This document shows positions 437 to 63,993 of a DNA stretch of 64,000 bases, one piece after another. Made by a program: the position numbers and the translations under genes. The notes under the pieces are model-generated. The model was given only the letters and a program-made list of their open reading frames with translations. It was not told where the DNA came from and searched no databases. How positions within the stretch are numbered: position 1 is the first letter of the stretch; the number at the start of each line of letters is the position of its first letter. Location: positions 124,001 through 188,000 of IMG/VR virus record IMGVR_UViG_3300005613_000001. One strand, given 5' to 3'.

Positions 437-590
437 TCAACCAATGCATCGTAGTCAGCAAAATCCCGCTCTTCTAACCTATCATACGCAGCTAAATATC
501 CCGCCTCTATAAGAGAATCAAATGCAGCCGCTTTGGCTTTGCCTCCTAAAAAGTGAACCGGGACATCCTCACAATACGCTATAGTTACTT

Positions 591-812
591 TCATTTTTCA
601 AACCAATTATTTGTTTCTTCTTTTAACTTATCAGAACCCTTTTTTGCAGCATCTTGGACACCATCTTTCAGGGTGTTAAGTGGCTGTTCCACCTTCTGTC
701 TGACATTATCCACATCACGTTTAACCTTATATGCTTCAAATGCTACCATTGCTACAATAAATAAAATAACGGCTAGTAGAACTACAATGAGTCCCATAAA
801 TAAATTTTTCAT
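591..812 (-). CDS. Small membrane-anchored protein
   Basis: N-terminal hydrophobic helix then charged helical tail; GGAG RBS. Confidence 0.6.
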   Translation of the reverse strand: MKNLFMGLIVVLLAVILFIVAMVAFEAYKVKRDVDNVRQKVEQPLNTLKDGVQDAAKKGSDKLKEETNNWFEK

Positions 813-832
813 GTTAGTCTCCTTACTAACAC

Positions 833-1069
833 TTATATATCGTTATTAAACGTGGGTTTGGGACTTACCACACTCCCTTCTTTCTTGTATCTCTCAATCG
901 CCTCTTTTAATGTAGTACCACAACTACCAACTTGTTCTTCACCATCCTTCCACCAGGCATACTCTTTTAGCCCAGCAAGAAAACCGGCTTCGTAACCAGC
1001 ATCATATGCATTGTGCTCTAAATCACGCAACTCTTGTTCAATTCTAGGATCAATTTCTGGTTCGCTCAT
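833..1069 (-). CDS. Hypothetical phage protein
   Basis: Tightly packed ORF; YDAGYEAGF repeat, LKEYAWWKDG motif. Confidence 0.6.
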   Translation of the reverse strand: MSEPEIDPRIEQELRDLEHNAYDAGYEAGFLAGLKEYAWWKDGEEQVGSCGTTLKEAIERYKKEGSVVSPKPTFNNDI

Positions 1070-1773
1070 TTAATTGCCGCCTTGTAAATGAGTTCTACTA
1101 CGTTCTTCAACACCGGGTAACCCAACATCCAATGGTATTCATGTCTTCTAATTTGAATTGCCGTATGAACACCCTCAGCTATCTGCCCGTCTTGAAATTC
1201 AGGCTTTTCACCAGAGGCTATTAATTGTCCCGCCTTAAAATTTCTACTCTTGTTGCTGAGACACGTTACGGCTAAATCTGCCATGTGGCGATTTATAGAA
1301 GTAATCCCCTTTAATTCTTCCCACGCATCAGCAAAATATACAGCCGCCATATTATCGCCATTGGTGTGTTTTTCAATTGAATAACCAATAGCGTAAACAT
1401 TTTTAAGAACACCAACCCACTCTAACTCATTGTATCCATATGATATGTCCAATTTCTCCTCAGTGGAAATACAAGCGCCTCCTAAAACAGAGATATATTT
1501 AGATCCCCAAATATCCCGAATGGCTTGAGTAGGCAAGTGACCCTTGCTATCCAATCCCTTGGTTGCCGAATGGACCGTTATATCAGGATCAACTTCATCA
1601 AAAAGCTCCAGGGTTTCTCTTAAATATTGCCCTGGAATTGCTACGATAATCTTATCCGCCTCTTTTATTTCAAATGGATCTTCAGGATGATTCCACGTTT
1701 TGATCTTAAACTTGGGGGCAAATTCTTTTTTGAGGCGGGCTCCCCATTTACCTTGACCGAGTATGATAATCAT
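1066..1773 (-). CDS. gpsA: NAD(P)H-dependent glycerol-3-phosphate dehydrogenase-like
   Basis: GQGKWG Rossmann motif, SATKGL, LKNVYAIG, DLAVTCLS..SRNFKAG, AEGVHTA. Confidence 0.85.
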   Translation of the reverse strand: MIIILGQGKWGARLKKEFAPKFKIKTWNHPEDPFEIKEADKIIVAIPGQYLRETLELFDEVDPDITVHSATKGLDSKGHLPTQAIRDIWGSKYISVLGGACISTEEKLDISYGYNELEWVGVLKNVYAIGYSIEKHTNGDNMAAVYFADAWEELKGITSINRHMADLAVTCLSNKSRNFKAGQLIASGEKPEFQDGQIAEGVHTAIQIRRHEYHWMLGYPVLKNVVELIYKAAIK

Positions 1774-1776
1774 ACT

Positions 1777-2292
1777 CTAAGATAGTAATTCCGCGTCATC
1801 AATTGCTTTTATTATACCCCTCATCAGGCTAACGCTTATTGAAGAACCATTGTGCAAGGTAAAAACTTGCCCATCGTATGTCCCCATGTGCGCACCTTCC
1901 TTGGTTACAACCCTCTTTAAATACTCAGGATAAGTTTCATCTAAATCATCAAAACACACTTCCTGTATCAGCGGCTTCTTTCTTCGCCTCTTCCAAGATA
2001 ACTCATATATTTTTGCATCATAACTATCCTGATAATTCAACCAAAAAGTAGCAGGCATGTGAAAAACTTTTGAGAACTTGTGAGCTAACTCCTCCGTAAT
2101 AGGTGCTAGTTCCCATATAATTTCCTCTATCGTCTCAACATCTTCCTCTATTACAACACAAAAAGCTTGCAATTTAGCTTCAAATGACTTTGGAACTTCA
2201 CCCAAAACAGAGTAGTGTTCAATGCACTCCTTGAGCGTAGCACCCGGATGAACCGCGTAATCAGGATCAAATTTTTGAGGCGGGATAGCCAT
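1777..2292 (-). CDS. HigA-like antitoxin HTH domain plus extra C-terminal domain
   Basis: AVHPGATLKE...ITEELAHKFSKVF...FWLNYQDSYD is the HigA/VapI signature. Confidence 0.7.
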   Translation of the reverse strand: MAIPPQKFDPDYAVHPGATLKECIEHYSVLGEVPKSFEAKLQAFCVVIEEDVETIEEIIWELAPITEELAHKFSKVFHMPATFWLNYQDSYDAKIYELSWKRRRKKPLIQEVCFDDLDETYPEYLKRVVTKEGAHMGTYDGQVFTLHNGSSISVSLMRGIIKAIDDAELLS

Positions 2293-4474: not shown

Positions 4475-4660
4475 TTACTCAAAAATTGCATAAGCGGCAA
4501 TATCAGCCGCCTCTTTTTTATATTTCCTTACTTTCATCTTAAAATGTTGCTTTTTTCCTTTTGATCCAGCAAGTCTCATTCTTCTTTCATGCTTATCTGC
4601 TAATGCTGATTTCACAGCATACAGGGCTGCTAATCTCTTAGTTTCCGTCCTGCTCAACAT
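4475..4660 (-). CDS. Small basic hypothetical protein
   Basis: ORF track; overlaps upstream gene end. Confidence 0.5.
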   Translation of the reverse strand: MLSRTETKRLAALYAVKSALADKHERRMRLAGSKGKKQHFKMKVRKYKKEAADIAAYAIFE

Positions 4661-5196: not shown

Positions 5197-5796
5197 TTAA
5201 TTGTGTAAATCCATCGCCACTATCCATTGCTTCTCAGGCTCCTTCTCTAATCGCTCAAATAAATATTGAGGCTGGGTGGCTGCTGCTTCACCATCATAGA
5301 AAAATGAATCAAAACAATAATAGCCCGCCATCAATTTCCCCAAAGAGTACAAATGGTGGCCTATCATTTCAAATTCAAATGAATGAGCATCCCTTGGCAA
5401 AGAATCCAACCGTAATGCATTTAAAAACTGGCCCATCTCCTGTTTGTTTTGCTCAGTTGTTCTCTTCGCCGCCTCTTTTTTATCCTGAATAGGAATCCCC
5501 CAGATATCATCGGGAACTTCTTCTTCTGTTACTTCCTTCCCAATGATCTTATTACGCAAGGTGCAAAAATAATTATCTCTAGATTTAAGAGCCCCTTCTA
5601 CAAATTTCTTAAATGCTTCGGGATCATCTTGGGCACAAAGAACATTTTTACCATTAAGCATTCCTGCCCATCTTCCGCCTTCTTCAAACCAATCCCATAC
5701 ATTTCCCTCACCAAAAGACTCTATTGCCGACGCCGCTTTTGCCGTAGCCTCAACTTCATCTTGAGCAACCACGGCAATTAGATGAACAACATGCAT
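5197..5796 (-). CDS. Hypothetical phage protein
   Basis: 199 aa; WDWFEEGGRW and WIVAMDLHN motifs typical of a phage family. Confidence 0.65.
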   Translation of the reverse strand: MHVVHLIAVVAQDEVEATAKAASAIESFGEGNVWDWFEEGGRWAGMLNGKNVLCAQDDPEAFKKFVEGALKSRDNYFCTLRNKIIGKEVTEEEVPDDIWGIPIQDKKEAAKRTTEQNKQEMGQFLNALRLDSLPRDAHSFEFEMIGHHLYSLGKLMAGYYCFDSFFYDGEAAATQPQYLFERLEKEPEKQWIVAMDLHN

Positions 5797-6030: not shown

Positions 6031-6419
6031 ATATCTGGTGGTTCTTCTACACTTTCTACTATGTATGTTCCTGTGCCGTCTTCATTCCAATCAATAGAAC
6101 CCGCAATCATCTTGCCAGATTGAAACGCAAGATTGGCACTTAACATCCGAGCATCATCATCACTTGTCACTGAAAACTGGTCGCCAACCTTAATATAAAG
6201 AGGCGGGGGACGCTTGCCAAATATGCTAGCAATTGCCGTTGTGGCAGCAAAAACAACAACTACAGTAAGCCACATCAATCCAAATGAAACAACAAGACAA
6301 AGGAAACCTATACCAATGTTTAACGTTTCAACTCCAAGCCAACTCTTCACCAAATAAACTGCTAGCACATGGTATCCTATAGTAATGCCCGCCGCAATTA
6401 AATAAACGAAATAATGCAT
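6012..6419 (-). CDS. Membrane protein (two TM segments); stop codon lies inside tRNA-Glu
   Basis: Hydrophobic N-half. Confidence 0.6.
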   Translation of the reverse strand: MHYFVYLIAAGITIGYHVLAVYLVKSWLGVETLNIGIGFLCLVVSFGLMWLTVVVVFAATTAIASIFGKRPPPLYIKVGDQFSVTSDDDARMLSANLAFQSGKMIAGSIDWNEDGTGTYIVESVEEPPDMAPSSS

Positions 6420-7174
6420 TACTCCGCCTCCGTGAAAACGTGTCGGCAGCCTATCTTGTACAAAAAATCGGCATACATCCTAACATTCCTCCCCCTAGCT
6501 CGCCTCTTCATTTTACGACAAACTTGTTTCAAATTTAACTTTTGCCACTTGCGGAACCCGGATTCGTCAGCCCAAGGAGGCAACCAGTTATACCAACTCT
6601 TAAAATATCGCCACGCTAGAAACATCCCTCTTTGTAAATCATGGTTAAAACCACTCATCCAAAAGTGATCGAATAAGTCCCGACCATCACCTTGATCTCT
6701 ATAATCATCCCATATATGTCGGGCTGTGCATATATGCCATGCATCATGAATGTTCGGAAGAGGAGGACGATACAAAAGACTTCGTGTACTTTTAATAGGC
6801 TCCGTTGCAAAAGCAACATACAAATGTTGATTCCCCACCCTCGCCATTATCACGTAGGGAAATTGAAGATGGTAAGCTTTATCATAATAATAAATCGTTC
6901 GTTTTTGAGGCGGATATTCCCTTATCTCCACAGACATTTTCTTGATTATTGTGCGATAATTTCTAGTTTCCCCTAATGCTCTATCTCTTTCCTTCCGCCT
7001 CTTTTTTTCTGCTTTTTCTCTTTCTTTTCTCGCTATTTCCTTTAAGACTTTTTTTAATTTCTTTCTCACGCCCGCTTTGGGACGCCCAATTTTCTTTGCT
7101 AGAGCTTCAATACCCATAGTCTCATTATGCTCTAGCAATACCGCCACTTCATCTTTTGTCCATCGTTTAGCCAT
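6419..7174 (-). CDS. HTH/coiled-coil + prokaryotic E2 family D-like domain
   Basis: YHLQFPYV...LYVAFATEPIKS...LYRPPLPNIHDAWHIC. Confidence 0.6.
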   Translation of the reverse strand: MAKRWTKDEVAVLLEHNETMGIEALAKKIGRPKAGVRKKLKKVLKEIARKEREKAEKKRRKERDRALGETRNYRTIIKKMSVEIREYPPQKRTIYYYDKAYHLQFPYVIMARVGNQHLYVAFATEPIKSTRSLLYRPPLPNIHDAWHICTARHIWDDYRDQGDGRDLFDHFWMSGFNHDLQRGMFLAWRYFKSWYNWLPPWADESGFRKWQKLNLKQVCRKMKRRARGRNVRMYADFLYKIGCRHVFTEAE

Positions 7175-7722
7175 TATTCATCATCCATAAAATAATGTCG
7201 ATTTCTTGCCCAATATACTTGTCCGCACTTATAATCTAAAAACCTCTTATATGAAACAACATGCTTGTCGTCTTTGAAAAACCATAAACGCCTCTTGCTC
7301 TGCTGTAATTTCAACACTACAGGTCCAATTTTGAGGCGGGACCAGTTTTTATAACCCCCAAAATATTTCCTTGCAAAACGTCGCCCCGCCTCCATATGTT
7401 GATTGAATGCTGTTTGCCAAACCAAATCAAAGGGGTGATTGGCATATTCATGCTGCCCGCCTAAACAGAAATGCCAATCTCCAACATGTACATTGGGAAG
7501 GGCAGGGAAATACAATTCAGTATGAAGGCTTTGAACGGGTTGTGCAGCAAAGGCTATATGTATCCTTTGCTGCTGTGCTAAAGCAAGAATGACATACGGG
7601 AACTGGAGGGTGTATTCTTTATTCCCGATGCGAACTGTGCGACGAGTGGGTTTATATTCCCGCACAGTCAGAGAAGGTTTAGCAAGTAATCTCCGATAAC
7701 TTTGATTAGCTTCTATAATCAT
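7174..7722 (-). CDS. Prokaryotic E2 family D-like protein
   Basis: YTLQFPYV...IHIAFAAQPVQS..TELYFPALPNVHVGDWHFC. Confidence 0.6.
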   Translation of the reverse strand: MIIEANQSYRRLLAKPSLTVREYKPTRRTVRIGNKEYTLQFPYVILALAQQQRIHIAFAAQPVQSLHTELYFPALPNVHVGDWHFCLGGQHEYANHPFDLVWQTAFNQHMEAGRRFARKYFGGYKNWSRLKIGPVVLKLQQSKRRLWFFKDDKHVVSYKRFLDYKCGQVYWARNRHYFMDDE

Positions 7723-8284: not shown

Positions 8285-8510
8285 CTCGCATCATATCCGC
8301 TAATTTTTGAGGCGGCACTTCAAAAGAATCCCCATTGGCCGGGTGAATTGTAAAAGTGTTACGAGTGATTTCAACCGTTCCCGTAGCACCGTCAAAACCA
8401 ATTGGCACTACAACAGAATCGTTATCTAAATCAACGTCTTGACTTCTAAATTCAACCTCCCCAGTATTCTCGTTAAACCAAACTTCAATATCTGAATCAG
8501 GCAAAATCAT
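8241..8510 (-). CDS. Acidic hypothetical protein
   Basis: ORF chain packing. Confidence 0.55.
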   Translation of the reverse strand: MILPDSDIEVWFNENTGEVEFRSQDVDLDNDSVVVPIGFDGATGTVEITRNTFTIHPANGDSFEVPPQKLADMMRDGEFKLPWDGLDDD

Positions 8511-9279: not shown

Positions 9280-10202
9280 TTTTTAACTCCTAAATGAATC
9301 TTAATCCAACCATCATCATCAATTTCAACGGCATCAAAAACCTTCTTTACCTTATCAACATCAATCGCCTTAACTATCTCTTCAATCTTCTGAACCGTTT
9401 CCTTGTCAAATAAACGAAATATGTCCAGAAGACCTTGTACTTGGGCTTTCTGCTGCGCTACGAGATGCTTGTCAAGTTCCTCCGGTACAAGTGTTATCAA
9501 TTTTTCCTTAACCGCCTCATATGTCAATCCAACATCTTTTAAAATTATCTGATGATGGGAAGTTGTCTTTTGACCAGTTGTGGCATCCCGTTGCGGCCTT
9601 AAAAGACCTAAAAGAAGATGCTCGGTGCCCACATAGAGTATCCCACTATCATCAGTAGTTGCTTCCTCCATAGCATAATCCATTAGCGTTTTAGCTGCCG
9701 GAGATAACGGAATCTTCCCAATAGGGCTAGCCTCCGAGCCCTTCACCATCAATTTCTCTAATCTGCATTCAATGTCTGCCGGGGATACCTTCATGGATTC
9801 CAAAAGCTTAACAGCAACCCCACCACGCTCTCTTACTATTCCAAAAATAATGTGCTCTAAATCAACTTGCATGTGATTATAACTACGTGCAACTTGATTG
9901 GCTATTGACATCACCTTGCGGGCACGATCAGAAAATCGTTCGTACATACTTGTCTCCCTAAGTTTATTCACACCAGCACCGATTTCTTTTCGGTGCGATG
10001 GCAGTCCATTCGTAACCGGAAGCACTACACTAAAGGCTCTGTTGCAACGGGAATTGCTACCTTCTACTTTCTCCGTAGCCTCTTTTTCTACATCGCCAGT
10101 TCCACACAAAAAAACATTATTCCCTATGTGGGTAACTACGTCACTTCCACACAAAGGGCAGAATTTTATCCGATGCTTCTTATAATGCTTCCTCATCTTC
10201 AT
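9276..10202 (-). CDS. Zn-ribbon + stand-alone ClpC-type N-terminal (Clp repeat) domain, no ATPase
   Basis: MYERFSDRARKVM...EHIIFG...YVGTEHLLLGLL. Confidence 0.8.
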   Translation of the reverse strand: MKMRKHYKKHRIKFCPLCGSDVVTHIGNNVFLCGTGDVEKEATEKVEGSNSRCNRAFSVVLPVTNGLPSHRKEIGAGVNKLRETSMYERFSDRARKVMSIANQVARSYNHMQVDLEHIIFGIVRERGGVAVKLLESMKVSPADIECRLEKLMVKGSEASPIGKIPLSPAAKTLMDYAMEEATTDDSGILYVGTEHLLLGLLRPQRDATTGQKTTSHHQIILKDVGLTYEAVKEKLITLVPEELDKHLVAQQKAQVQGLLDIFRLFDKETVQKIEEIVKAIDVDKVKKVFDAVEIDDDGWIKIHLGVKK

Positions 10203-12421: not shown

Positions 12422-12495
12422 TAGGCAGAGCCGGGCTCGAACCGACGACCTTCTGGATGTAAACCAGACGCTCTTCCAACCTGAGCTATCCGCCT
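12422..12495 (-). tRNA. tRNA-Val(TAC)
   Basis: TCTGG-TT TAC AT-CCAGA. Confidence 0.92.
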
Positions 12496-12501
12496 CTAAA
12501 A

Positions 12502-13926: not shown

Positions 13927-14071
13927 CTCATAATCTCCGTGTTATCTATATAGTAGTTAAGTTCTAAAAAAAAGAACCTTGTTTTTGGCCGGGTCAGAGG
14001 TCTTCCTGGTTGAGAGGGGGCGTGACCCGGCTGTTGGTGCATCCGGCTGGGTTGTCACCCCGCCTCTTTAG

Positions 14072-16040: not shown

Positions 16041-16863
16041 ATCCCAAATAGCTTTCAAACGACCCATGCTGTAATCTATTCGCTTCACAAAAATGGAACC
16101 CCTCCTCTTTGCCGGTTACCTCATAATGAACCTTTTCTATCTGTTTAAATCCATGTGTCCAACATTTATATTTTTTGTCCCAATACACACGATTTACAGC
16201 ATGAACACATTTTCCTTCAGCAAACACCTGGACAATTTTTTCTTTTGGGATAACAATATGAGGGTGTTGCAAAATAGTGTAGGTAACCAACCCCTGTTCA
16301 TCACCGCCTCCATTTAAAACCTTAAAAGCACCTAGCTCTCTCCAATACTTACAAATCTCTTGTTGCATATCATATCCTGGGGGGTATCCCAAAATGCCAG
16401 AATTAAATTTTTCATCTGGGTTAAACAAAAAGAAATATCTACCATGATAAGATGTGTCTTCTTCTAAAACAAGTGTTTTATCGCTTGCTAAAAATTCATC
16501 TATTTCAGAAAATCTTTTCCGAACAATAACATCATTATCTAATATAATCTCATGTGTGTCCATTGCTAATCGAGGCGGACAAATTTTCCAAAATGAACCA
16601 CTTGCCTCTCGCGTCCGGCCAGAAGGGACCATAACTGAATCAAGGGGGAACTCTGACCTTTTTGATAATCTAATTTCAATACCATGAATGGCAGCTATTT
16701 CTTCAATAAACCGAACACAATGAGACTCTGTAGCATTACTGCAAATCAACCACCGGAAATTATCTTTTCCCAAACAATCAATTGCAGAAATAACAGATTC
16801 ACGTAATGCCAGCAAGCCCTGATGAATTGCATTGCCCATTGTCCAGCGAATTAGTGGTCGCAT
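16009..16863 (-). CDS. GT-A-fold glycosyltransferase-like (paralogue of 24029-24742)
   Basis: WKICPPRL...HEIILDND...NSGILG.PP...DEQG. Confidence 0.6.
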   Translation of the reverse strand: MRPLIRWTMGNAIHQGLLALRESVISAIDCLGKDNFRWLICSNATESHCVRFIEEIAAIHGIEIRLSKRSEFPLDSVMVPSGRTREASGSFWKICPPRLAMDTHEIILDNDVIVRKRFSEIDEFLASDKTLVLEEDTSYHGRYFFLFNPDEKFNSGILGYPPGYDMQQEICKYWRELGAFKVLNGGGDEQGLVTYTILQHPHIVIPKEKIVQVFAEGKCVHAVNRVYWDKKYKCWTHGFKQIEKVHYEVTGKEEGFHFCEANRLQHGSFESYLGFKQKAKRFLM

Positions 16864-27568: not shown

Positions 27569-27778
27569 TCACGGCAATTCATCCCATCGCTTGAATGCCG
27601 CCTCTAATTTTCTATCAATTGGCCGCTTGCCAAAAGCGATAAGAGAGCGAATTTCATCAAATCGCACCACTTCAAAGCACTCAGAGCAATGAAGATGATC
27701 TGATTCCGCCTCAAATTTTTTGTTTTTACAACTTGGGCATTCAAGATTCATCGTTCTCGTATTCCTCTTGTAAAGCAT
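27569..27778 (-). CDS. Small Zn-ribbon protein (start probably MNLEC)
   Basis: CPSC...CSEC. Confidence 0.55.
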   Translation of the reverse strand: MLYKRNTRTMNLECPSCKNKKFEAESDHLHCSECFEVVRFDEIRSLIAFGKRPIDRKLEAAFKRWDELP

Positions 27779-35349: not shown

Positions 35350-35354
35350 TCAAT

Positions 35355-42305: not shown

Positions 42306-42725
42306 TTAATATAATTTTAAATCTCCTGTTACTTTGTCAATTTTCTCTGCATCATCTGGTCCGATTGCGATACAAGTTGGTGTTGGAACTCCATCAAATT
42401 CGGTTTTCCCACTATCAACGATCAATTCACAAACGAGCCCTTCATCTTCTGCTTTCTGTTTAACTTCCATCAATTCTTCTTCGCTATTCACTCTAACGGT
42501 GACTTTAGCGAAGCTATTTTTTATCCATTCAATTTCTTGTTCGCTTAGATGTAGAACATCCAGAAGTTTTACTGTTCCTGCCCAGGGCAGAGGATGTTTT
42601 TGATCTAATTCTTTTCTAATTCTGTTTGATAAAAAGGCCATTGAGGCATGAGACCCTTGGGCAATTTCTTTACCCCGCCTCATTTTTAAATCTTTACGAA
42701 TTACAATGACCTGTTTTACTGGCAT
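42306..42725 (-). CDS. pth2: Peptidyl-tRNA hydrolase, Pth2 family
   Basis: KQVIVIRKDLKM.RGK..AQ.SHA; DSGKTEF...T.T..AIGP...IDKVTG.LKL. Confidence 0.93.
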   Translation of the reverse strand: MPVKQVIVIRKDLKMRRGKEIAQGSHASMAFLSNRIRKELDQKHPLPWAGTVKLLDVLHLSEQEIEWIKNSFAKVTVRVNSEEELMEVKQKAEDEGLVCELIVDSGKTEFDGVPTPTCIAIGPDDAEKIDKVTGDLKLY

Positions 42726-44048: not shown

Positions 44049-44304
44049 GCAACCTTGAAATTTTCGTCCAGACTCGCTCGGGGATTCCAGGTGGTCCGAA
44101 ATTGCCCCTCCTCTGGGGGATCTAATGCATTCCCAAATAAAATGTTGCCTGTCATTACCACAAATTGCCAAAATTCTTCTTGGGTGGTGTCGTCGGGCAA
44201 TTGTGCCCTAATCCGCCTCAACTCCCTCTTTTGGGGGTCGGGATGAAGTGGAACTGTTACTTCCATTGACACCACTCCGACTGAGAGGTTCACGTACAAT
44301 TCCA

Positions 44305-45565: not shown

Positions 45566-46639
45566 ATGAGGTTCATTCCATATCTGGGCAACAAACGCAA
45601 GCTCATAGACCCCATCCTAAAGGCGATAGGACAGCAGGGCAAGGTCTTGGACCTGTTCTCGGGGAGTGGGGTTGTCAGCTATCATCTGCGAAAGCGAGGG
45701 GCTGTCGTCCATGCCAATGATACCGCCTCTTATTCTTATCATATTAATAAGACATACTTGGGAAGAATTGACCGCTCCGAACAGTTTTCCCAATATATAA
45801 ACTGGCTTAATAAATTTAGTGAAAATCCCAGAGAAAGATACTTTTCTAGATATTACAGTGAGAATCCAGACGCTTCAAAGGAAAGAATATACTACACAGC
45901 GAGAAATGGAGCATTCATAGATTTCATTCTTCAACAAGTGTGGGCCAGAACTTGGATTCAAAAAATATTTGAACATTCCAACACCTGGGAATCTCCTGTT
46001 TTGTGTGATTTACTTTACCAAATGTGTACTCACGCAAACACTTCTGGCGTATTCAAATCTTGGCATAAGAAATTTGCAGGAGAGAAACGATTTGAGGGGG
46101 TTCACAAGAGAGTGCATAAATCCAATCTTAAGCGTATTACGACACCTATTAAACTTGAAGTGCCTACGATACCGGAAGGTCCAGAAGGTCAAGCATTCCA
46201 ATACGATGCAATAGAATTCTTTGATCGGGTGGATGATGAATACGACGCAATTTATATTGACCCGCCGTACAATACCCACCAGTATTCTGCTAATTATCAC
46301 CTATTAGAACAAGCCTGCCGCCCCTTTGAAAGAAGATATATACCAACTGACGATCAGGTGAGTGGGATTCAACCGGACTTATACAAATCCCCATATTGCA
46401 GCAAAAAGAAGTTCCACAAGACTTTTGTTGCTCTTTTTGATAAAATTAAAGACCGAACCAATCGCCTCGTAGTCTCCTACAACTCAAAAGGCTTTCTGGG
46501 CCAACAGGAGATTAAAAATCTATTAGGGGAAAGGTTTAATGAGGTTTCAGTCCAAGAGATAGATTACTTTAATTATAGAGGCGGCAGGGCGGCTAAGGAG
46601 CCTGTTAAGGAGCTATTGTTCATTGCGGAGAATTCATGA
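45566..46639 (+). CDS. DNA adenine methyltransferase (D12/FokI-like class)
   Basis: PYLGNKRKL; DLFSGSGVVS; YIDPPYN.HQYSANYHLLE. Confidence 0.88.
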   Translation: MRFIPYLGNKRKLIDPILKAIGQQGKVLDLFSGSGVVSYHLRKRGAVVHANDTASYSYHINKTYLGRIDRSEQFSQYINWLNKFSENPRERYFSRYYSENPDASKERIYYTARNGAFIDFILQQVWARTWIQKIFEHSNTWESPVLCDLLYQMCTHANTSGVFKSWHKKFAGEKRFEGVHKRVHKSNLKRITTPIKLEVPTIPEGPEGQAFQYDAIEFFDRVDDEYDAIYIDPPYNTHQYSANYHLLEQACRPFERRYIPTDDQVSGIQPDLYKSPYCSKKKFHKTFVALFDKIKDRTNRLVVSYNSKGFLGQQEIKNLLGERFNEVSVQEIDYFNYRGGRAAKEPVKELLFIAENS

Positions 46640-47382
46640 ACGTTGTTTGCTTTTTTGAAAATATAATTCATTCACGCATAGGCAAAGACGCAGACAAACT
46701 AATCAGTTTGTGGGAAGAATCGTGGAGTCGGTGGGGGTGGAACCCTATTGTGGCGGGAATAAAACACGCAAAACAGCATCCGATGTATGATGCCTTTAAC
46801 GATACATCTTCTCCACTCTACACTTATTCAACTAACAACCCTAAACACTTGAGGCTTTGTTACTTGAGATGGCTAGCGTATCATTCTTTTGGATGCACCT
46901 GGGCAGATTTGGATGTAATGAACTATGGTGTTACACCGGCTATGATGCCAAAGCTCTCAGATTTGCCAATATATTTTTCTAAGTCTGGTTGTTGCGGTCA
47001 TTCCAATAAAAAGGGGTACTCCAAGATTATAAAAAATCTTTCTAGATTTTTAGATGAAAAAACAACGCAAAACTTTATAATCGATAACGAACAACACACC
47101 AACGACATGAGGTTATCAGCTAGAACACGCGAAGATTTTTACCCGCCCCAGTATATTAATAATCCAGACAATAAATTGAGTTGTACTGATTTCTACAAAG
47201 ACAATGGGGATTATTTATTGGTGCATTACCACGGGCGATTATATCACATTAATTTAGTAATTCAAGAGCATCCAGAGTACACAAACCGCCTCAAATTTAT
47301 TCAAAGGGTCATAAAAGGCTTAGGCAAGAAGCCAAGCAGGGCAAGAATAATACAGGCTATTCGTCCTGTTGCAACTCTTTAA
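46636..47382 (+). CDS. Hypothetical GT-A-like protein
   Basis: CY.RWLAY...DLDVMNY. Confidence 0.55.
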   Translation: MNVVCFFENIIHSRIGKDADKLISLWEESWSRWGWNPIVAGIKHAKQHPMYDAFNDTSSPLYTYSTNNPKHLRLCYLRWLAYHSFGCTWADLDVMNYGVTPAMMPKLSDLPIYFSKSGCCGHSNKKGYSKIIKNLSRFLDEKTTQNFIIDNEQHTNDMRLSARTREDFYPPQYINNPDNKLSCTDFYKDNGDYLLVHYHGRLYHINLVIQEHPEYTNRLKFIQRVIKGLGKKPSRARIIQAIRPVATL

Positions 47383-52869: not shown

Positions 52870-53954
52870 ACATCATTCTCGCTATAGCTGTTGCTGTACA
52901 GCAGTTCTTTCTGCTTCGACTTCTTCTTTTTCTTATCACCGCCTCTAGTTTTTTCTGCTTCTCTTAAAATTCCACAACAAGCCTCATAAAGCTTGTCATA
53001 AAGGCGATTCCTGAAACAGCTAACGGCATTACGGTCAGCAGCAGAAGCCGCCTCTTGATTAGAAAGATCACCAATCAATCTTCTCAATGCATTTGAAGCT
53101 TCTGTGACAGCCGAATCAACAATTGGACCCACTCTCATTTTTAAATCTTGAGAAGTGTCGTATGCCATTGCCATAACATCGTGGAGCGTTGATCTGTGTT
53201 GCCAGTTTTTATTCACAATAAAAAGAGGGTCTTTTTCACTCTCAGAGGCCCAAGCGGCAAGATTTCTCAATCTTTCATCCGACCTAGCTTCAGCATAAAA
53301 ATTGTCATGAATATCATTATTAAAAGTAGAACCCCAAAATCCCTCAATAATTGAATTTCCAATGGTAGAAAGTGACCAATCTTCTTGGGGAATTCGGTCA
53401 AGGGGTGCATAAACGGCATCTCGCCCAACACAGCAAACAAAATTGGCATCAATATTGGGAAGATTCGGTCTATAAAGTGAACTAGCAAGTGTTTTCAGTG
53501 GAATCCTACCGTAAGCCACTTGAAGACTGCGAGGATAGATTCGCCCCTGTTCCCTTTTAAGCCACATTAGAAACACAACATATGGAAAAGCAAGCCGATA
53601 GTACCCATTGCCTAATTCGCATTCAAATTTAACTGTTCTAACAACAGGCTTTTGCTCTACGACAAGCAATTTCATATCCCCGATAGTTTTAAGGAGACGG
53701 GTGCCTTCGGGGACCACTTCAAGAACATTGTTTGTTTCTTCCCAATCATTACAAAACCGCAGAAGCCCATCACTCAACCTACCCTTGAAACCATTAACAA
53801 TACTTTCCGCAATATTTGAGACTTCTACATGCACCCTTTGGGAAAGGCTAGACATCGAAACTTTAAGAGCTTCGGCAATAACATCTTTCATCTGCCGTGA
53901 CGTTAGTAGATCTGTAACTTTGCGATCAACTAGGCTGTAATCTGCATCCCGCAT
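52863..53954 (-). CDS. Prokaryotic E2 family D-like protein, tandem paralogue
   Basis: YRLAFPYVVF...LQVAY...PL..L...LY.PNLPNI....VCC.G...FW.S.FN.D. Confidence 0.7.
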   Translation of the reverse strand: MRDADYSLVDRKVTDLLTSRQMKDVIAEALKVSMSSLSQRVHVEVSNIAESIVNGFKGRLSDGLLRFCNDWEETNNVLEVVPEGTRLLKTIGDMKLLVVEQKPVVRTVKFECELGNGYYRLAFPYVVFLMWLKREQGRIYPRSLQVAYGRIPLKTLASSLYRPNLPNIDANFVCCVGRDAVYAPLDRIPQEDWSLSTIGNSIIEGFWGSTFNNDIHDNFYAEARSDERLRNLAAWASESEKDPLFIVNKNWQHRSTLHDVMAMAYDTSQDLKMRVGPIVDSAVTEASNALRRLIGDLSNQEAASAADRNAVSCFRNRLYDKLYEACCGILREAEKTRGGDKKKKKSKQKELLYSNSYSENDVW

Positions 53955-55766: not shown

Positions 55767-56873
55767 TTAAACGGCCCAATGGGGGTTATCCAGTGTCCAT
55801 TTCACCACCTGATTAATGCTGTCCTCAAAGGTGATCGGCATTTTCCAGCCGAGCCCCTTCATCTTCGCATCATCAAGAGCGTAACGGCGATCATAACCCT
55901 TACGAGCCGATTCAGAGGGAACTAATTTATATTTAAGTTCTTTACCCATAAATTTTGCAATCATTTGGGCCAACTCAAGGTTATCCAATTCAACGTCACC
56001 ACAAACATTATATCTGTCTGGACGTTCGGCACCATCCTTATACATTGCCGGAGAGAACTGGGAAAGAAAAACAAAGGCATCGGCATGGTTCTTAGCGTGT
56101 AGATAATACCTAGCCCCAATAGAAGTTGTGCCATCATCATTCAAATCTGCATATACCGGCATTTCTTGATCTAATGCCACTTTCTGAATGATCTTCGGCA
56201 AAAACTTCTCAGGGTCTTGCCATTCACCAAAATTATTCATTGTGTTTGTAATCACTACTGGCACATCATAAGTTCGCCAATAAGCAATCGCCATCGCCTC
56301 CTGCGCCGCCTTGCTGGCTGCATATGGATTTGAAGGCATAATTACATCCCATTCATGGTGCGCCTGATCTGGCTTGGCTTCTCCATACACTTCATCCGTT
56401 GAAACTTGGAAAAATATCTTGGGTTTAATCTTACGAGCGAATTCCAGCATGTTGATGGACAACTCATAATTATTCCTCAAACAATGAACAGGATCGGTCG
56501 TAGACCTCTCTACAGCACTATCACTCGCCATGTTGATAATATAATCAATTGGCTTTTCCACAACCTGCCCATTTTCAAACCTTCGCTCTAAAATCTGGTT
56601 TTCTAGCTGCTGATCTATAGGAGCGATTAAATCGTGATAGTAATTTTTGAGGCGGGTGTTCATCTGGTTCAATGCATCAATATGTTTCCGCCCCTTTAAT
56701 TTATAACATTTTCGTTTGTAGTTCTCTAAAGCATCATTCAAACGAGTGTATGTGCCTTTGTGGCGAAACGAATCAAGACCAATGATTTCCCAATCAGTAT
56801 TGAATAGAAAGTAGTCTACACAATGGGAACCTATAAACCCCGCATGTCCGGTAAGAAGAACTCGCTTAGGCAT
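55767..56873 (-). CDS. rfbB: dTDP-glucose 4,6-dehydratase-like NAD-dependent epimerase (start MPKRVLL)
   Basis: TGHAGFIG; AS.S.V.RS; VSTDEVYG; PSNPYAASKA; EKFLP; RK.YD.RYALD. Confidence 0.82.
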   Translation of the reverse strand: MPKRVLLTGHAGFIGSHCVDYFLFNTDWEIIGLDSFRHKGTYTRLNDALENYKRKCYKLKGRKHIDALNQMNTRLKNYYHDLIAPIDQQLENQILERRFENGQVVEKPIDYIINMASDSAVERSTTDPVHCLRNNYELSINMLEFARKIKPKIFFQVSTDEVYGEAKPDQAHHEWDVIMPSNPYAASKAAQEAMAIAYWRTYDVPVVITNTMNNFGEWQDPEKFLPKIIQKVALDQEMPVYADLNDDGTTSIGARYYLHAKNHADAFVFLSQFSPAMYKDGAERPDRYNVCGDVELDNLELAQMIAKFMGKELKYKLVPSESARKGYDRRYALDDAKMKGLGWKMPITFEDSINQVVKWTLDNPHWAV

Positions 56874-56875: not shown

Positions 56876-57400
56876 TTATCTCCAATGGAAGTGATAGTTG
56901 TATCTTGAATATGGTTGATAATACGGACGATGATAATACGGACGATATTGATATGGCAACGTGTAGGGATAAAACCATGCATGTTGTTTTGTGACTCTTT
57001 GATTAGACATTTCCCTTTGTTTTAATATTTGCTGTATTCGCATGTCTTGTGCCTTGCGAAAAGATTCATGAGCCATTTGAGCTTGAGCAACCTTCACCTT
57101 ATAAACATCAAGAAACATCCTCGCCTCGGTATTGCTCATACCTTCAAATTCTGCCTTCTTTTCCTGATAGTCCGCCTCAGTAAAATCTTTTCTAACGCGG
57201 AATTCATAGGCCAACCGAGATAAGTACCAATTTTTCTCCGTTTGAAGGGTAGCATCAAGAGCGGTGTCCGCCACCTCCTCCGTTTCCTCCTCCATTGGCA
57301 TTTCTATAACAACAGGCGGGGGAGGATCAACCCAATCCATTGTAAACCCCATATGAAGATCACCCACAATAAACGCTGATAATATAAATAGACTATTCAT
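56876..57400 (-). CDS. Secreted-like protein with Tyr/Pro-rich tail
   Basis: Hydrophobic N-terminus. Confidence 0.55.
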   Translation of the reverse strand: MNSLFILSAFIVGDLHMGFTMDWVDPPPPVVIEMPMEEETEEVADTALDATLQTEKNWYLSRLAYEFRVRKDFTEADYQEKKAEFEGMSNTEARMFLDVYKVKVAQAQMAHESFRKAQDMRIQQILKQREMSNQRVTKQHAWFYPYTLPYQYRPYYHRPYYQPYSRYNYHFHWR

Positions 57401-58024: not shown

Positions 58025-58563
58025 TCACAGTAATTGTTTAAAACATCATTACGCCAAATTAAAATGTCAGAGTGTTGATCCCACAAACAATCAGACAGCC
58101 TACTAATAATCTTGTTTCTTTCTCGCTTCGGAGTTTGGCGATCAACGCTTTTAAAAAGTTCATGTGTTAATTCGCCCTTTTGAGCAAACCAACCATCTAA
58201 ACTGTAAAGAACCATCTCCCACGTTTTATCCGATAATTCATTTTTGGACACCATCTTAGGCTTCCCTATTTCCTTTGCCCAACTCAACAAAAAATCTTCA
58301 TACTCATCGTAGCAAAGCGATTCCGATGCTAAAAAATTAAAAAAACGGTTTCCACTTCTATAGCTGTGCTTGTAACCATTATGATAAAGAGAAAAACAAG
58401 CAATAACATACTCTTGAGGATTGTTCCTTACATTGACTCTTTTGATGGTAACAAAAAACCATTTATGCGAATCGTGATTTTCAAGAATCAAATATCCGAG
58501 GCGGGGACAACCAACCAGAGGTTGCCTACAAAATCTTCGCGCATATTCCTCATGTAAGAACAT
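58003..58563 (-). CDS. Hypothetical protein
   Basis: 186-aa ORF. Confidence 0.55.
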   Translation of the reverse strand: MFLHEEYARRFCRQPLVGCPRLGYLILENHDSHKWFFVTIKRVNVRNNPQEYVIACFSLYHNGYKHSYRSGNRFFNFLASESLCYDEYEDFLLSWAKEIGKPKMVSKNELSDKTWEMVLYSLDGWFAQKGELTHELFKSVDRQTPKRERNKIISRLSDCLWDQHSDILIWRNDVLNNYCDWIIKLT

Positions 58564-60975: not shown

Positions 60976-61869
60976 TTATTTTGGTTTTATGTCTAAATAA
61001 GAGTCTGGGGTTTTAGAATTTAAAATATCAGCATTCAAATCTTTCATATAACGAAGATAACTCGCATCAAATTGCGAATACCCATTAAATCCAATTCGTC
61101 GCAATACTCCATCTGGATCGCTGCTAGATTTCATAAACTCATGCAACACATCCTGCCCAAATTCTTTTCTTATCAACAAACACAACGCTAAGCTTTGTGT
61201 ATCAAATAATTCCTTTTCTTCTTTACTTAGCTTCATATAGCCATCCTCATCCATAGCAAACATAGCTTTACTGAAAAACAACTCTTTATGTTCTCGCAGC
61301 ATAGCCAATTGGGTGCGTATTAATGGAACGGTGTTATTGAGTCTTGATACACCTCGATAAACCCAAGTTCTTAATCTCAATCCATGTTTCTGGTCAAACT
61401 CACTTAAACATGGTGTCGTAAGACATTCAGGAACTACCTCTGATGGTGAGTCATCTAAAAGCAGCCAAACAGCCGACATTGTTATTTTATTAGACTCCTT
61501 TCTCACTTCTGCCCTTGAATCCTCTATTCTAAATAACTTTTTCATTAAGGTTTTTGTTGGAACGCAAATCACCCGACATTCCGAAGAAAAATCAACATTT
61601 GGGAATCCCCACCTTTTCATAACCCAGGTCTTAATTTTCTCAATGTTCCGAGCCATAAAAAGACCTTGATCTTCTTCCAACGCCAAAACTGTGAAATTCT
61701 CCGTTGTCCAACGATGCCATTCCAGATCCTTAATTTCAGGATCATCGAAACCCCAATCTTCCATTTTCTCCGTGCCATGATAAACCACGGGTTCTGGAAA
61801 TGCCTCCTGCGCCTGCGTGGCGGTTACCATAACCACCATAAGAATTAAAGCGCTCGCTACCTTAAACAT
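60976..61869 (-). CDS. Secreted-like hypothetical protein
   Basis: Signal peptide-like N-terminus. Confidence 0.6.
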   Translation of the reverse strand: MFKVASALILMVVMVTATQAQEAFPEPVVYHGTEKMEDWGFDDPEIKDLEWHRWTTENFTVLALEEDQGLFMARNIEKIKTWVMKRWGFPNVDFSSECRVICVPTKTLMKKLFRIEDSRAEVRKESNKITMSAVWLLLDDSPSEVVPECLTTPCLSEFDQKHGLRLRTWVYRGVSRLNNTVPLIRTQLAMLREHKELFFSKAMFAMDEDGYMKLSKEEKELFDTQSLALCLLIRKEFGQDVLHEFMKSSSDPDGVLRRIGFNGYSQFDASYLRYMKDLNADILNSKTPDSYLDIKPK

Positions 61870-62828
61870 TTTCTCTCTCCCATTGTACAGGTTTCTAATA
61901 GTTTCTTAGCTGAAATTTGAATCTTTCGATTGGTGGCATGTAAGGCTAGTCTTTTTAAAAACCAAACCTTAGCATTATATAGAGTTCTGCTTAGTATATA
62001 AAAATTACTCGAATTTGACAAGCCTAAAATATTTAATGTAGTTTCAACATCAACACACTTTAAGTTTCTAGGCATCGTTAATGTTTCATAATTATCAACA
62101 AAAGATACAAAAAGTTGCACCCAATTTTTAATACACTCTCCATCTAAAGTGCCTTCAGGAAATCTGAATTCTATTGTACTTCGATCAAAAGTCTTACGCC
62201 GACGACTGCGGGCGTAATTCACTAAGTTTAACGCTACCTGTTTTTGATTATTTTCATGAATTGATATGTCAGTAGGGCAGATGATTTTCCAAAACTCTAA
62301 TGGATCATACCGCCTCAATAAACTTAACTTCTTCATCTTAGAACCAACGAGCGGACTGCAATAACTTGTGATTCTCCGATCAGGGGCGATACATTGCATC
62401 ATTACATTTTCAATTTTAAACCAATTGGCTAAAAGGACACCAATCTGTTCCGGTTCAAAATCTCCCACACCCACATGAACGTGCAAGCCACAGTTATCGT
62501 TGATCGTCAATCCACGCCGCCTCAAATGATTTGCAATTTTCCCAATGTGCTGCAAATCTTGGTAGCCGGAGGCTTTGTATGATGCGACTTCCCATCCATG
62601 ATCAAAATACTTTCCAAGGGGACCACAGGTGGCATCATATTTAACATGCCAAAAATCGTTATTTAAAGATTGTGCCCAACCATTGCCGCTGCTGGGTACA
62701 CGAACTGATTTAAAAGAAACCTCTTTTATAAAAGAGGCGATGTCCTTGCGGGGGACTTCGGGGCCAACTTCTAGTTCCACCCCAAAACTACGGTTGCTAG
62801 AAAACCGCTTATACTGAATAGCATGCAT
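61857..62828 (-). CDS. Putative amidoligase (COOH-NH2 ligase)
   Basis: FGVELE; W.VK.D.T; E.AS; CGLHVHVG; TIEFR..EGT. Confidence 0.82.
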   Translation of the reverse strand: MHAIQYKRFSSNRSFGVELEVGPEVPRKDIASFIKEVSFKSVRVPSSGNGWAQSLNNDFWHVKYDATCGPLGKYFDHGWEVASYKASGYQDLQHIGKIANHLRRRGLTINDNCGLHVHVGVGDFEPEQIGVLLANWFKIENVMMQCIAPDRRITSYCSPLVGSKMKKLSLLRRYDPLEFWKIICPTDISIHENNQKQVALNLVNYARSRRRKTFDRSTIEFRFPEGTLDGECIKNWVQLFVSFVDNYETLTMPRNLKCVDVETTLNILGLSNSSNFYILSRTLYNAKVWFLKRLALHATNRKIQISAKKLLETCTMGERKCLR

Positions 62829-62877
62829 TTTAAGGCTCCCTCCTCAAAAATAACTAATATACGGAAAAAAATCAAGA

Positions 62878-63096
62878 TTAAGTTTCTTGAACAAATTCCG
62901 TGTTTCCCACATCCACCAGACCATCATCTGGTCCAAACCTTCGTCCCTTCGGGGGTTCCGGTGGGGGCATTGATGTAAGAATGCTGTATAGGTCTCCTAT
63001 GCCCTCAGTATTCCTAACAACAAGCGCTCCAATCATAATGATTGAAAGCAAATTTAAAACACACAATATCAAAATAATTACAATTAAAGTTATCAT
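62878..63096 (-). CDS. Small membrane protein
   Basis: N-terminal TM helix. Confidence 0.55.
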   Translation of the reverse strand: MITLIVIILILCVLNLLSIIMIGALVVRNTEGIGDLYSILTSMPPPEPPKGRRFGPDDGLVDVGNTEFVQET

Positions 63097-63111
63097 AAAA
63101 TTAAAATAGTA

Positions 63112-63993
63112 TCAAGTAAGTAAAACATCCTTGGGTATAATTTGGCTAATATCCAACCTCGGCGTGGCAGACCCAACACCCTGCTGGGAAATTTCTATCT
63201 TTAAATACGGATCAAGTAGCCACTCAGGAGATTTAAATAAACCGATATTATCGAAACACACATTAAGTTGTCCATTAATATTTGAGGCGGTGGTTGTCTC
63301 TATAATTGCATGAGTTTCAGTATTCAACATAAAACTGAAGACCAAATTCAATCCTGGGGGGCATACCTCTTCTGGAATAAATGCCATCAAAATCCTTGTG
63401 TCGAAATCCTCACCTGTTGTAATATTTTTCCTCTTGATGTATACACTGAACTTCCACACTTCAACGCCTAATTCCGTAGTGCCACTTCGCCTCACTTCTC
63501 CGACATCTACACCACCAACATCAGTTACACAGGCCCATTCAATCAAAATGGTCCAAGTTTCGGTGGAATTCCCATCCTCTCCCACTCCGCTATAATGTTG
63601 ATTAACTTGCCATGACTCATTCCCAGCGTTGTAAATTAAATTCATCACACTAGAAATTTGAAGTCCATTTCTTGTTAAAAATTGCGATAGTTTATTTGTA
63701 TCCTCTAAGTTGTGCCTTGCTTGAACAACCACAGGAACCAATTCGCATTCACAAGCTTCCCGAACTACTGCTGTTGATTCCTCTAGATCTTCACCATCAT
63801 CATCTTGGAACACAGCCTGCAAATCGCTATATTGAGTATAAAATGCCACATTGCTTACAAACTCACCAAGATATACAGTGGCATCCGATTCCCCTTCTGC
63901 ATCAATTTCTATATCAATAATTTCATCTTGAGTGTAACCACTAGAAGAAAATTCGCCCGGTGATGAAATTTCAATATCGCCAAATTCATCCAT
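63112..63993 (-). CDS. Acidic hypothetical protein
   Basis: 293-aa ORF. Confidence 0.55.
   Translation of the reverse strand: MDEFGDIEISSPGEFSSSGYTQDEIIDIEIDAEGESDATVYLGEFVSNVAFYTQYSDLQAVFQDDDGEDLEESTAVVREACECELVPVVVQARHNLEDTNKLSQFLTRNGLQISSVMNLIYNAGNESWQVNQHYSGVGEDGNSTETWTILIEWACVTDVGGVDVGEVRRSGTTELGVEVWKFSVYIKRKNITTGEDFDTRILMAFIPEEVCPPGLNLVFSFMLNTETHAIIETTTASNINGQLNVCFDNIGLFKSPEWLLDPYLKIEISQQGVGSATPRLDISQIIPKDVLLT

Follow-up and report, generated by a model that had tools for sequence, protein, structure and literature searches.

We find that a single asymmetric heptamer, CCGCCTC (GAGGCGG on the complementary strand; hereafter the word), is written throughout a phage genome in far greater numbers than codon or amino-acid usage can produce. 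The stretch that we analysed (hereafter the window, 64,000 bp) comprises bases 124001-188000 of G000, a single contig of 527,112 bp (40.8% G+C) that is classed as a virus record (IMGVR_UViG_3300005613_000001) and is CheckV-complete. The word is under a strand-symmetric pressure acting at the level of DNA, its specificity is graded from position to position, its sites are preferentially retained among close relatives, and only a young lineage carries it. We infer that there is a protein that reads it, whose protein this would be, and which process it would serve.

In the window, an exact search returns 39 copies, of which 25 read CCGCCTC on the plus strand and 14 on the minus strand, whereas dinucleotide-preserving shuffles give 3.5 ± 1.8 copies with a maximum of 8, and none of 100 shuffles reaches 39. 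The initial annotation had counted about 39 copies by eye against an expectation of only a few, and both figures stand, as do all 35 of the coordinates that it listed; the four copies missing from its list lie at 12490, 14060, 32076 and 35345. The whole genome contains 354 copies, 198 on one strand and 156 on the other (0.67 per kb), where an order-2 Markov model predicts 27.4, and CCGCCTC is the most over-represented 7-mer of G000 (~13x). Its core, CGCCTC, is the top 6-mer by ratio (641 copies against 107 expected, 6x), and it also heads a maximal-order Markov ranking for k = 5 to 7. Taken together with its flank, which we describe below, the word matches the genome 177 times, compared with 2 matches for a reversed-word control. 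Moreover, a separately assembled metagenome record, in which 19.4 kb match the phage at 100% identity, carries 14 copies against 0.8 expected, and the excess is therefore not an artefact of assembly.

The genome encodes a T4-type large terminase (TerL) together with tail sheath, sheath-stabiliser and baseplate proteins. The closest GenBank relative, at 50% identity, is LR756511.1, an uncultured huge phage of 595 kb, and the next matches come from Flavobacterium phages and cyanophages at ~30%. Our simple gene model contains 742 genes that cover 90.6% of the genome, with crude gene starts. As the standard code already yields 91% open reading frame (ORF) coverage, there is no sign of genome-wide recoding.

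Selection on DNA rather than protein

The word is predominantly genic, with 319 of the 354 copies (90%) lying inside genes, which matches the coding fraction of 90.6%. Read in the sense of the gene, GAGGCGG occurs 123, 40 and 33 times in frames 0, 1 and 2, and CCGCCTC 48, 40 and 35 times, where about 4-5 copies are expected per class; all six frame-by-strand classes are thus enriched, and an earlier claim of frame independence is borne out. Shuffling synonymous codons within genes leaves 32 ± 5 sense copies of GAGGCGG and 11 ± 3 of CCGCCTC, as against 196 and 123 observed, permuting codons within genes leaves 24 and 7, and a synonymous shuffle barred from creating 35 words that the genome avoids leaves about 34 and 14. 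Even an analytic expectation that preserves dicodons, and so holds 6 of the word's 7 bases constant from the outset, accounts for 158 copies in total against 319 observed, and the excess is present in every frame class (expected in frames 0/1/2: 90/15.5/8.9 for GAGGCGG and 14.3/9.2/19.9 for CCGCCTC). The initial annotation had placed the selection on DNA rather than protein and had named the dicodon-preserving null as the setting in which the enrichment might vanish; the enrichment persists there, and the null models and frame classes together strongly support selection on DNA. A by-product of codon or amino-acid usage is ruled out by the synonymous, codon-permutation and dicodon nulls.

The word is written mainly through codon choice. 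It is spelled with rare codons (CTC, CGG, CCG and GCG, at 7%, 9%, 13% and 15% relative usage), and it is realised in 30-38% of compatible tripeptides in four frame classes and in 7-8% in the other two, where codon usage predicts 1-8%. The proteome itself is mildly bent, word-compatible tripeptides being 1.2-1.4x commoner in four of the six classes. Realised fractions are similar on both strands, and the 198:156 difference between strands arises because one frame offers more coding opportunities.

Orientation of the word follows gene strand and frame opportunity only, without clustering at the genome ends. Copies are spread evenly over the genome and over the length of genes, and their spacing is near-exponential (mean 1482 bp, coefficient of variation 1.17, Kolmogorov-Smirnov p = 0.28). 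The sites do not resemble promoters or intrinsic terminators, as they show no intergenic preference and lie on either strand relative to genes. The four longest word-free stretches (9-11.6 kb) hold the genes for the tail sheath, a gp15-like protein and the baseplate, which are the most conserved proteins; the presence of tail sheath and baseplate genes inside them rules out that these stretches are foreign islands. As a separate observation, the G-C skew of G000 is strongly negative and co-oriented with the gene strand, and its sign flips near 55-60 kb together with gene orientation.

Anatomy of the site

The recognised unit can be written as [C>A,T]CGCC[T>C]C followed by one free base and an A/T tract of 4-6 bp. 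At position 1, C is enriched 12.9x, A or T 4.5x and G 1.7x, and at position 6, T is enriched 12.9x and C 4.1x, while positions 2-5 and 7 are strict in counts of single-base variants. Such graded positional specificity is typical of protein-DNA recognition. The (T/A)CGCCTC variants that the initial annotation had mentioned are indeed enriched (126 and 118 copies, each about 4.5x), and GC-rich words akin to CCGCC are raised mildly (2-4x), whereas the transition neighbour CCACCTC/GAGGTGG is 5-fold depleted (7 copies against 40 expected).

Positions +8 to +14 are A/T-rich, on the 3' side only and with A about equal to T. A free base and four A/T bases (N+W4) follow the word in 50% of genome copies, as against 13-16% in the background, and in the window at least 4 of the 5 bases at +2 to +6 after CCGCCTC are A or T in 36 of 39 copies, so that the A/T flank noticed earlier by eye is real. 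As this flank is one-sided and contains A and T about equally, it is a property of duplex DNA. The word does not belong to a repeat element or miniature inverted-repeat transposable element, since its 5' flank is uninformative and its 3' side carries only the A/T bias.

Among close pairs within 120 bp, inverted arrangements number 26 and direct ones 13. Two perfect intergenic hairpins are formed from opposed copies, at 414813-414842 and 423652-423681 of G000; both have ~12-bp stems with A/T loops and look like terminators, and the hairpin at 423.65 kb is kept in a relative's contig.

Retention among related phages

The word is present in the contigs L002, L169 and L156, and contigs that are 75-87% identical to G000 share its enrichment (6 copies against 0.3 expected in L002, 4 against 0.4 in L169). 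When the relatives' sites are aligned to G000, to which these relatives are about 80% identical, 7 of 10 are identical there, and 7 of 17 aligned G000 sites are identical in relatives. Matched GC-rich 7-mers in the same alignments are conserved in 18.6% of cases, and the word is therefore retained 2-4 times better. G000 has more sites than its AT-richer relatives. In relatives at 65-68% nucleotide identity, or at 44-59% TerL identity, the word stands at chance level. Retained in close relatives and at chance in distant ones, it is thus a young word that is being maintained while its sites still turn over. A scan of viral contigs with the word's hairpin matched only the known relative and returned no unrelated contig sharing the word.

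Two other over-represented words were seen among these phages. In LR756511.1 (contigs L005 and L007-L010, 242 kb sampled), the asymmetric word AGCTGTAC occurs 95 times against 4.2 expected, with a strand ratio of 55:40; its extended, A-rich context is a T and then AA before the word and WAAA after it, and about 26% of its copies lie outside long ORFs. Instead of corresponding to the word of G000, it may be an element of another kind, for example a promoter-like one. In one phage at 59% TerL identity (L158, L003 and L004), TGGTGGG/CCCACCA, which holds the TGGTGG core of Chi, appears enriched: 21.7 kb contain 9 non-redundant sites, where about 1.4 would be expected. As a coding tandem repeat accounts for 3 of these, the number is too small for a judgement.

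Avoidance of restriction words in the same genome

The genome that multiplies CCGCCTC also deletes other short words. In its 527 kb, 25 palindromic hexamers, each expected 20-171 times, have no site at all (among them TGGCCA, GGATCC, AGGCCT, GGGCCC, TCCGGA, CTGCAG and CGATCG), and CCATGG, GACGTC, GCGCGC and TGATCA are nearly absent, while AT-rich palindromes are untouched. The asymmetric words CACGAG and CAGCTC are likewise absent. Of the hexamers built on GATC, GGATCC and CGATCG are absent, but TGATCA (16 sites) and AGATCT (65 sites) are depleted only in part. Four orphan DNA methylase genes, and no C5-methylase, are present in this genome that purges restriction sites wholesale.

The word CACCTC/GAGGTG, one transition away from the enriched core CGCCTC, is 7-fold depleted on both strands (23 sites against 157 expected; 5 and 15 on the sense strand), and it could be another restricted asymmetric site. 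We note that GAGGTG is also an extended Shine-Dalgarno complement. That CGCCTC is an escape sink of the avoided CACCTC is ruled out, because for the remaining fully avoided words even the strongest single-base neighbours rise to no more than 1.3-1.9x (median about 1.0), as against 6x and 13x for the core and the word. A by-product of palindrome avoidance is ruled out in turn by the shuffle barred from the 35 avoided words. Moreover, avoidance is common to all of the relatives examined. Consequently, given the constrained shuffle, the weakness of other sinks and the existence of relatives with the same avoidance that lack the word, avoidance cannot explain it.

Candidate readers and host scans

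The coding sequence (CDS) at 45566-46639 of the window encodes a D12-class N6-adenine methylase with no match in the PDB, and three N6/N4-class methylases are encoded elsewhere, at 414.0, 466.2 and 520.0 kb of G000. A RecA/UvsX-like ORF lies at 271.2-272.0 kb and a Rad50/gp46-like ORF at 333 kb. No match to a C5-methylase (PF00145) or to Vsr (PF03852) was found anywhere in G000, nor was any helicase-nuclease of RecBCD/AddAB size, the only find being a PD-(D/E)XK nuclease of 258 residues; a phage-encoded Vsr/Dcm drive and a phage-encoded RecBCD-like reader were accordingly set aside.

The word was not found enriched in any of 587 bacterial genomes (401 Bacteroidota and 181 Cyanobacteriota, both phyla evenly sampled, and 5 others), where the maximum is 14-19 matches per Mb, close to that of reversed-word controls, as against 239-336 per Mb in the phage. 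A scan of bacterial genomes with the hairpin gave scattered single matches only, and a literature search for CCGCCTC itself returned nothing relevant. Predicted starts in G000 have a sharp Shine-Dalgarno-like peak at -12 to -9, and such a peak argues against a Bacteroidota host. The literature on huge phages predicts Bacteroidota as hosts of the largest clade (PMC7162821).

A proposed function and its alternatives

Our preferred explanation, to which we assign a probability of roughly 0.4, is that the word is a self-tag resembling the uptake signal sequences (USS) of bacteria and, more loosely, Chi, that its reader comes from the phage lineage, and that its likeliest uses are the selection of DNA for packaging or the sparing of DNA from a nuclease. 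CCGCCTC, the free base and the A/T tract would together form a selected recognition site, written mainly via rare synonymous codons, and the copies would amount to a dense, orientation-free mark of the phage's own DNA that a sequence-specific protein reads on the double strand, with the GC core as the contact and the A/T tract as a bendable or meltable flank. The reader could use the tag to choose or spare phage over host DNA wherever the two kinds of molecule compete, for example when DNA is selected for packaging or is to be protected from a processive nuclease. A site for packaging or for a nucleoid protein, which the initial annotation had suggested, is compatible with the anatomy of the word and falls within this class. 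We are more doubtful of a narrower version, in which a private word with a bendable flank would be read by the phage's packaging machine, or by its host-DNA-degrading or end-processing nuclease machine, and would have co-evolved with the deletion of restriction sites and been rewritten as lineages diverged; viruses would then have their own equivalent of self-recognition by uptake signals or Chi.

Several points weigh against a self-tag read by the phage lineage. No reader protein for the word was identified and no candidate emerged; the retention statistics rest on 27 sites; the bacterial scans covered 401 Bacteroidota, 181 Cyanobacteriota and 5 other genomes, and a word determined by the host (a Chi or a true uptake signal) may be at work in another phylum, such as Proteobacteria or Firmicutes. 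No phage is known to us in which a word in many copies serves packaging or marks the phage's own DNA, and T4-type packaging is regarded as sequence-independent. Additionally, the tripeptide inflation of 1.2-1.4x is smaller than that of USS (about 2x), and the surplus of oppositely oriented close pairs (26 against 13) is marginal.

The alternative that survives best, though we hold it to be unlikely, is mimicry of a host Chi, whereby GAGGCGG would be the Chi of the host's RecBCD- or AddAB-type enzyme and copies in both orientations would spare cut or linear phage DNA and channel it into recombinational repair. Asymmetric and rich in G, the word looks similar to GAAGCGG and AGCGG, two Chi words of the AddAB type. 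The heavy restriction pressure on G000 implies that double-strand breaks are a real threat, and with no enzyme of RecBCD size in the phage such a reader would be the host's. Moreover, a headful-packaged, permuted genome would need both orientations, which could relax the requirement for polarity. Chi-rich lambdoid phages offer a precedent, to which G000 compares with one site per 1.5 kb and the word as its top 7-mer (PMC12315714). However, those phages carry Chi in one orientation, clustered at an end and without a recombination module, whereas in G000 the word is near-balanced and evenly spread beside RecA/UvsX-like and Rad50/gp46-like genes. The one-sided flank points to recognition of duplex DNA, whereas Chi is read on single-stranded DNA. 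The negative scan of 401 Bacteroidota, 181 Cyanobacteriota and 5 other genomes is weak evidence against a host Chi. The initial annotation's term "Chi-like" consequently describes a possible but imperfect fit, in that the word lacks polarity, has a duplex-type flank, and sits in a genome with its own RecA-like recombinase and no RecBCD/AddAB-type reader.

By-product accumulation of a word has been proposed for HIP1 and for Dcm/Vsr sites, and a repair or gene-conversion drive without function, in which a very-short-patch-type activity converts GAGGTGG and the like to GAGGCGG, is a further candidate, albeit an improbable one. It would be consistent with the depletion of CCACCTC/GAGGTGG beside a 13-fold enriched word, and with the greater number of sites in G000 than in its AT-richer relatives, as would be produced by ongoing gain. 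However, the word and its T-variant have an expected sum of 67 as against 361 observed, more than T-to-C conversion could yield by itself. The remaining single-change neighbours show no depletion, and several of them are enriched, contrary to what conversion predicts; the phage has neither a Vsr nor a C5-methylase gene; the depletion of CACCTC fits the general avoidance of restriction words; and the A/T flank is left unexplained.

We attach equally little likelihood to sites of priming or initiation, at which the phage's primase, primosome or initiator would bind the GC core and the A/T tract would melt. Either strand would then offer a start about every 3 kb, as would be required by recombination-dependent replication with forks running both ways. 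A GC element beside an A/T tract does resemble the architecture of origins and promoters, about one site per 3 kb per strand is close to the lengths of bacterial and phage Okazaki fragments, and the sites are orientation-free and evenly spread. Yet known primases recognise about 3 bases and act on unwound templates, for which a meltable flank is unneeded, and the sites are not promoters, having neither an intergenic preference nor an orientation with genes.

A target of methylation or restriction-modification is slightly less probable still. Here the word would be the site of an orphan phage methylase, for example the D12-class enzyme at 45566-46639 that the initial annotation had singled out, and its abundance would be tied to epigenetic marking. 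Four methylases are encoded by the phage (one of the D12 class, three of the N6/N4 class), GAGGCGG offers one adenine and several cytosines, and the cyanobacterial HIP1 is both over-represented and overlapped by methylase sites. Being a target nevertheless gives no reason for a 13-fold enrichment, and restriction pressure in G000 shows itself as the deletion of words, with 25 hexamers at zero, rather than their multiplication. Furthermore, D12 enzymes are typically of the GATC type, the enzyme in the window has no PDB match from which a specificity could be deduced, and a one-sided A/T tract is alien to known methylase sites; the suggestion has no support.

Finally, a statistical or compositional by-product (of codon usage, amino-acid motifs, placement of G+C so as to avoid palindromes, or escape from CACCTC) is very improbable: it gains something from the largest class, GAG-GCG-G in frame 0, of whose 123 copies the dicodon null accounts for 90, and from the mild rise of CCGCC-related words, but none of four null models yields the excess, enrichment extends to all six frame classes, the neighbours of other avoided words are at most weakly raised, and sites are retained above background in relatives, while the word is missing from other relatives that avoid palindromes in the same way. 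The probability that remains beyond these six readings belongs to something that we have not considered.

If the phage does read the word, large viruses would have a new way of recognising their own DNA, with a bearing on packaging fidelity, host-DNA degradation and survival under extreme restriction pressure. If instead the host reads it, the word would mark a hitherto unknown Chi or uptake specificity and would offer a handle, from sequence only, for assigning hosts to huge phages. Either way, DNA-level signals can strongly override codon usage in a virus.

Copies in the window and neighbouring genes

In what follows, positions are those of the window, the sign after a copy is the strand carrying CCGCCTC, and copies are called G-form or C-form according to whether they read GAGGCGG or CCGCCTC in the sense of their gene. 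The leftmost copy, 501..507 (+; G-form, frame 0), lies in CDS 424-594(-). A GpsA-like CDS, 1066-1773(-), holds both 1656..1662 (+; G-form, frame 0, flank 5/5 A/T) and 1732..1738 (-; C-form, frame 2), and CDS 1777-2292(-) holds 2277..2283 (-; C-form, frame 0). Two G-form, frame 0 copies are followed by T6, namely 4507..4513 (+) in CDS 4475-4660(-) and 5469..5475 (+) in CDS 5197-5796(-). Beyond 6200..6206 (-; C-form, frame 0) in CDS 6012-6419(-), three copies share CDS 6419-7174(-): 6424..6430 (+; G-form, frame 0), whose flank is weak (3/5 A/T), 6907..6913 (-; C-form, frame 0) and 6995..7001 (+; G-form, frame 2). The adjoining CDS 7174-7722(-) contains an opposed pair 53 bp apart, 7333..7339 (-; C-form, frame 2) and 7386..7392 (+; G-form, frame 0), and is followed by 8309..8315 (-; C-form, frame 0) in CDS 8241-8510(-) and 9512..9518 (+; G-form, frame 0) in the Clp_N-domain CDS 9276-10202(-).

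The four copies absent from the earlier list are all on the plus strand. Two of them overlap the 5' ends of tRNA genes, 12490..12496 that of tRNA-Val (12421-12495(-)) and 35345..35351 that of tRNA-Asp (35275-35349(-)); 14060..14066 falls outside the gene model, between a tRNA array and the next CDS, and 32076..32082 is intergenic, before tRNA-Pro, and has no A/T flank (2/5). CDS 16009-16863(-) contains 16304..16310 (+; G-form, frame 1) and 16572..16578 (-; C-form, frame 0). Three single copies follow, 22749..22755 (-; G-form, frame 1) in CDS 22289-23032(+), 24561..24567 (+; C-form, frame 1) in CDS 24029-24742(+) and 25061..25067 (-; C-form, frame 2) in the RlaP-like CDS 24737-25642(-), and a small CDS, 27569-27778(-), carries two G-form, frame 0 copies in the same orientation 108 bp apart, 27598..27604 (+) and 27706..27712 (+).

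Further along are 40946..40952 (-; C-form, frame 0) in CDS 40599-41054(-), 42675..42681 (+; G-form, frame 2) in CDS 42306-42725(-) and 44213..44219 (+; G-form, frame 2), without A/T flank (2/5), in CDS 44045-44314(-). The D12 methylase CDS, 45566-46639(+), itself contains 45723..45729 (+; C-form, frame 1) and 46578..46584 (-; G-form, frame 1), and CDS 46636-47382(+) has 47286..47292 (+; C-form, frame 2). CDS 52863-53954(-) holds 52939..52945 (+; G-form, frame 1) and 53048..53054 (+; G-form, frame 0). In the epimerase/dehydratase CDS, 55767-56978(-), lies 56649..56655 (-; C-form, frame 2); the next copy, 57172..57178 (+), is outside the gene model, and in the ORF list ORF 56876-57400(-) covers it. 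The last four copies are 58498..58504 (-; C-form, frame 2) in CDS 58003-58563(-), 62310..62316 (+) and 62517..62523 (+), both G-form in frame 2 of an amidoligase CDS (61857-62828(-)), and 63284..63290 (-; C-form, frame 1) in a CDS that runs from 63112 past the window edge (-).

The window also contains 41 tRNA genes in a few arrays on the minus strand (5955-43979). Among its tRNA-type genes are one with a CTA anticodon at 43265-43350 (called 'Pyl' by ARAGORN; 32 bits with Rfam), a suppressor-type tRNA with a TTA anticodon at 43352-43425, and a tRNA-like gene at 34908-34994 for which a four-base anticodon was called. Three radical-SAM-domain proteins are clustered at 16863-17915, 19710-20858 and 20868-21698 (within 15267-24742 of the window), and a group 1 glycosyltransferase (23025-24032) adjoins them. 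The NAD-dependent epimerase/dehydratase (55767-56978(-)) has viral nearest atlas clusters, and no close cellular relative of it was found. Cluster, glycosyltransferase and epimerase/dehydratase together suggest a module for the modification of sugars or of the cell surface.

Elsewhere in the genome are genes for a complete CHASE3-HisKA-HATPase sensor histidine kinase (L166:624-2153; 376.1-377.7 kb of G000) and an HldE-like bifunctional heptose kinase/adenylyltransferase (L168:3382-4764; 246.8-248.2 kb). The best cellular homologues of these two proteins are at most 45-53% identical, and HldE copies that are 56-74% identical sit on contigs of related phages.

Comparison with known systems

Words distributed genome-wide (Chi, USS and the DNA uptake sequences (DUS), the FtsK-orienting polar sequences (KOPS) and the highly iterated palindrome HIP1) are known from bacterial chromosomes, and the documented phage cases are of a borrowed, polar host Chi. 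KOPS and the related SRS guides are G-rich 8-mers with a skew of more than 80% that switches at origin and terminus, whereas the phage word is distributed 56:44 between strands, without a switch beyond that of gene-strand blocks. HIP1 (GCGATCGC, of cyanobacteria) resembles the phage word in being abundant, in occurring within genes regardless of frame, and in being thought to be maintained at the DNA level. However, HIP1 is palindromic and tied to methylases or nicking enzymes, and its core CGATCG is absent from G000 (0 sites against 38 expected), whereas the phage word is asymmetric; "HIP1-like", another early description, is not supported for a non-palindromic word in a genome where neither a Vsr nor a C5-methylase gene was found.

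The stoperators of cluster A mycobacteriophages are a case in which a phage-encoded protein reads about 30 asymmetric, phage-specific binding words. These are 13 bp long, mostly intergenic and oriented with transcription, in contrast to a word with 354 copies, 90% of them genic, and no rule of orientation.

Lambdoid phages can be enriched in the Chi of their hosts, at 1 per 1.86 kb, and the top octamer of phage MD8 is host Chi; Chi-rich phages of this kind are one-oriented (20:3, 32:0) and end-clustered and have no recombination module of their own (PMC12315714). With such phages (LLS, MD8, P1) the G000 word shares its rank as top oligomer, its asymmetric, G-rich make-up of 7-8 bases and its density (1 per 1.5-1.9 kb); it plausibly counts, too, once DNA ends lie open, and G000 is under strong restriction pressure. 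They differ in that Chi-rich phages are polar and end-clustered, while the 198:156 copies in G000 are even and accompanied by RecA-like and Rad50-like genes, and in that the A/T flank of the word has no counterpart in Chi.

Of the known systems, USS come nearest to the word in anatomy, and they were not among the options of the initial annotation. In the USS of Pasteurellaceae an AT-rich motif directly follows a short core on its 3' side; the USS occurs about once per kb without orientation bias, includes some closely spaced opposite pairs, and has many genic copies, with inflated tripeptides and a preference for poorly conserved genes (PMC1626085, PMC2817400). Like USS (core AAGTGCGGT) and the DUS of Neisseriaceae, the phage word has a short, GC-containing core at about one copy per kb, and, like USS, it is evenly spread without orientation bias, is followed by a 3' A/T tract, forms close opposed pairs, including perfect intergenic hairpins, and is specific to a clade. 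Moreover, its copies are mostly genic, in all frames, with raised tripeptides, and are scarce in strongly conserved genes. Unlike USS, it has a core of 7 bp rather than 9-10 bp and one clear A/T tract, its carrier is a virus, and it is accompanied by no known competence machinery or host with the same word, none of the 587 bacterial genomes being enriched. Uptake into a competent cell, which is what defines USS, cannot as such hold for a phage. Since the carrier is a phage, with a T4-like terminase and tail genes, and bacterial enrichment is lacking, the word is not a member of the USS, and yet it is built like one.

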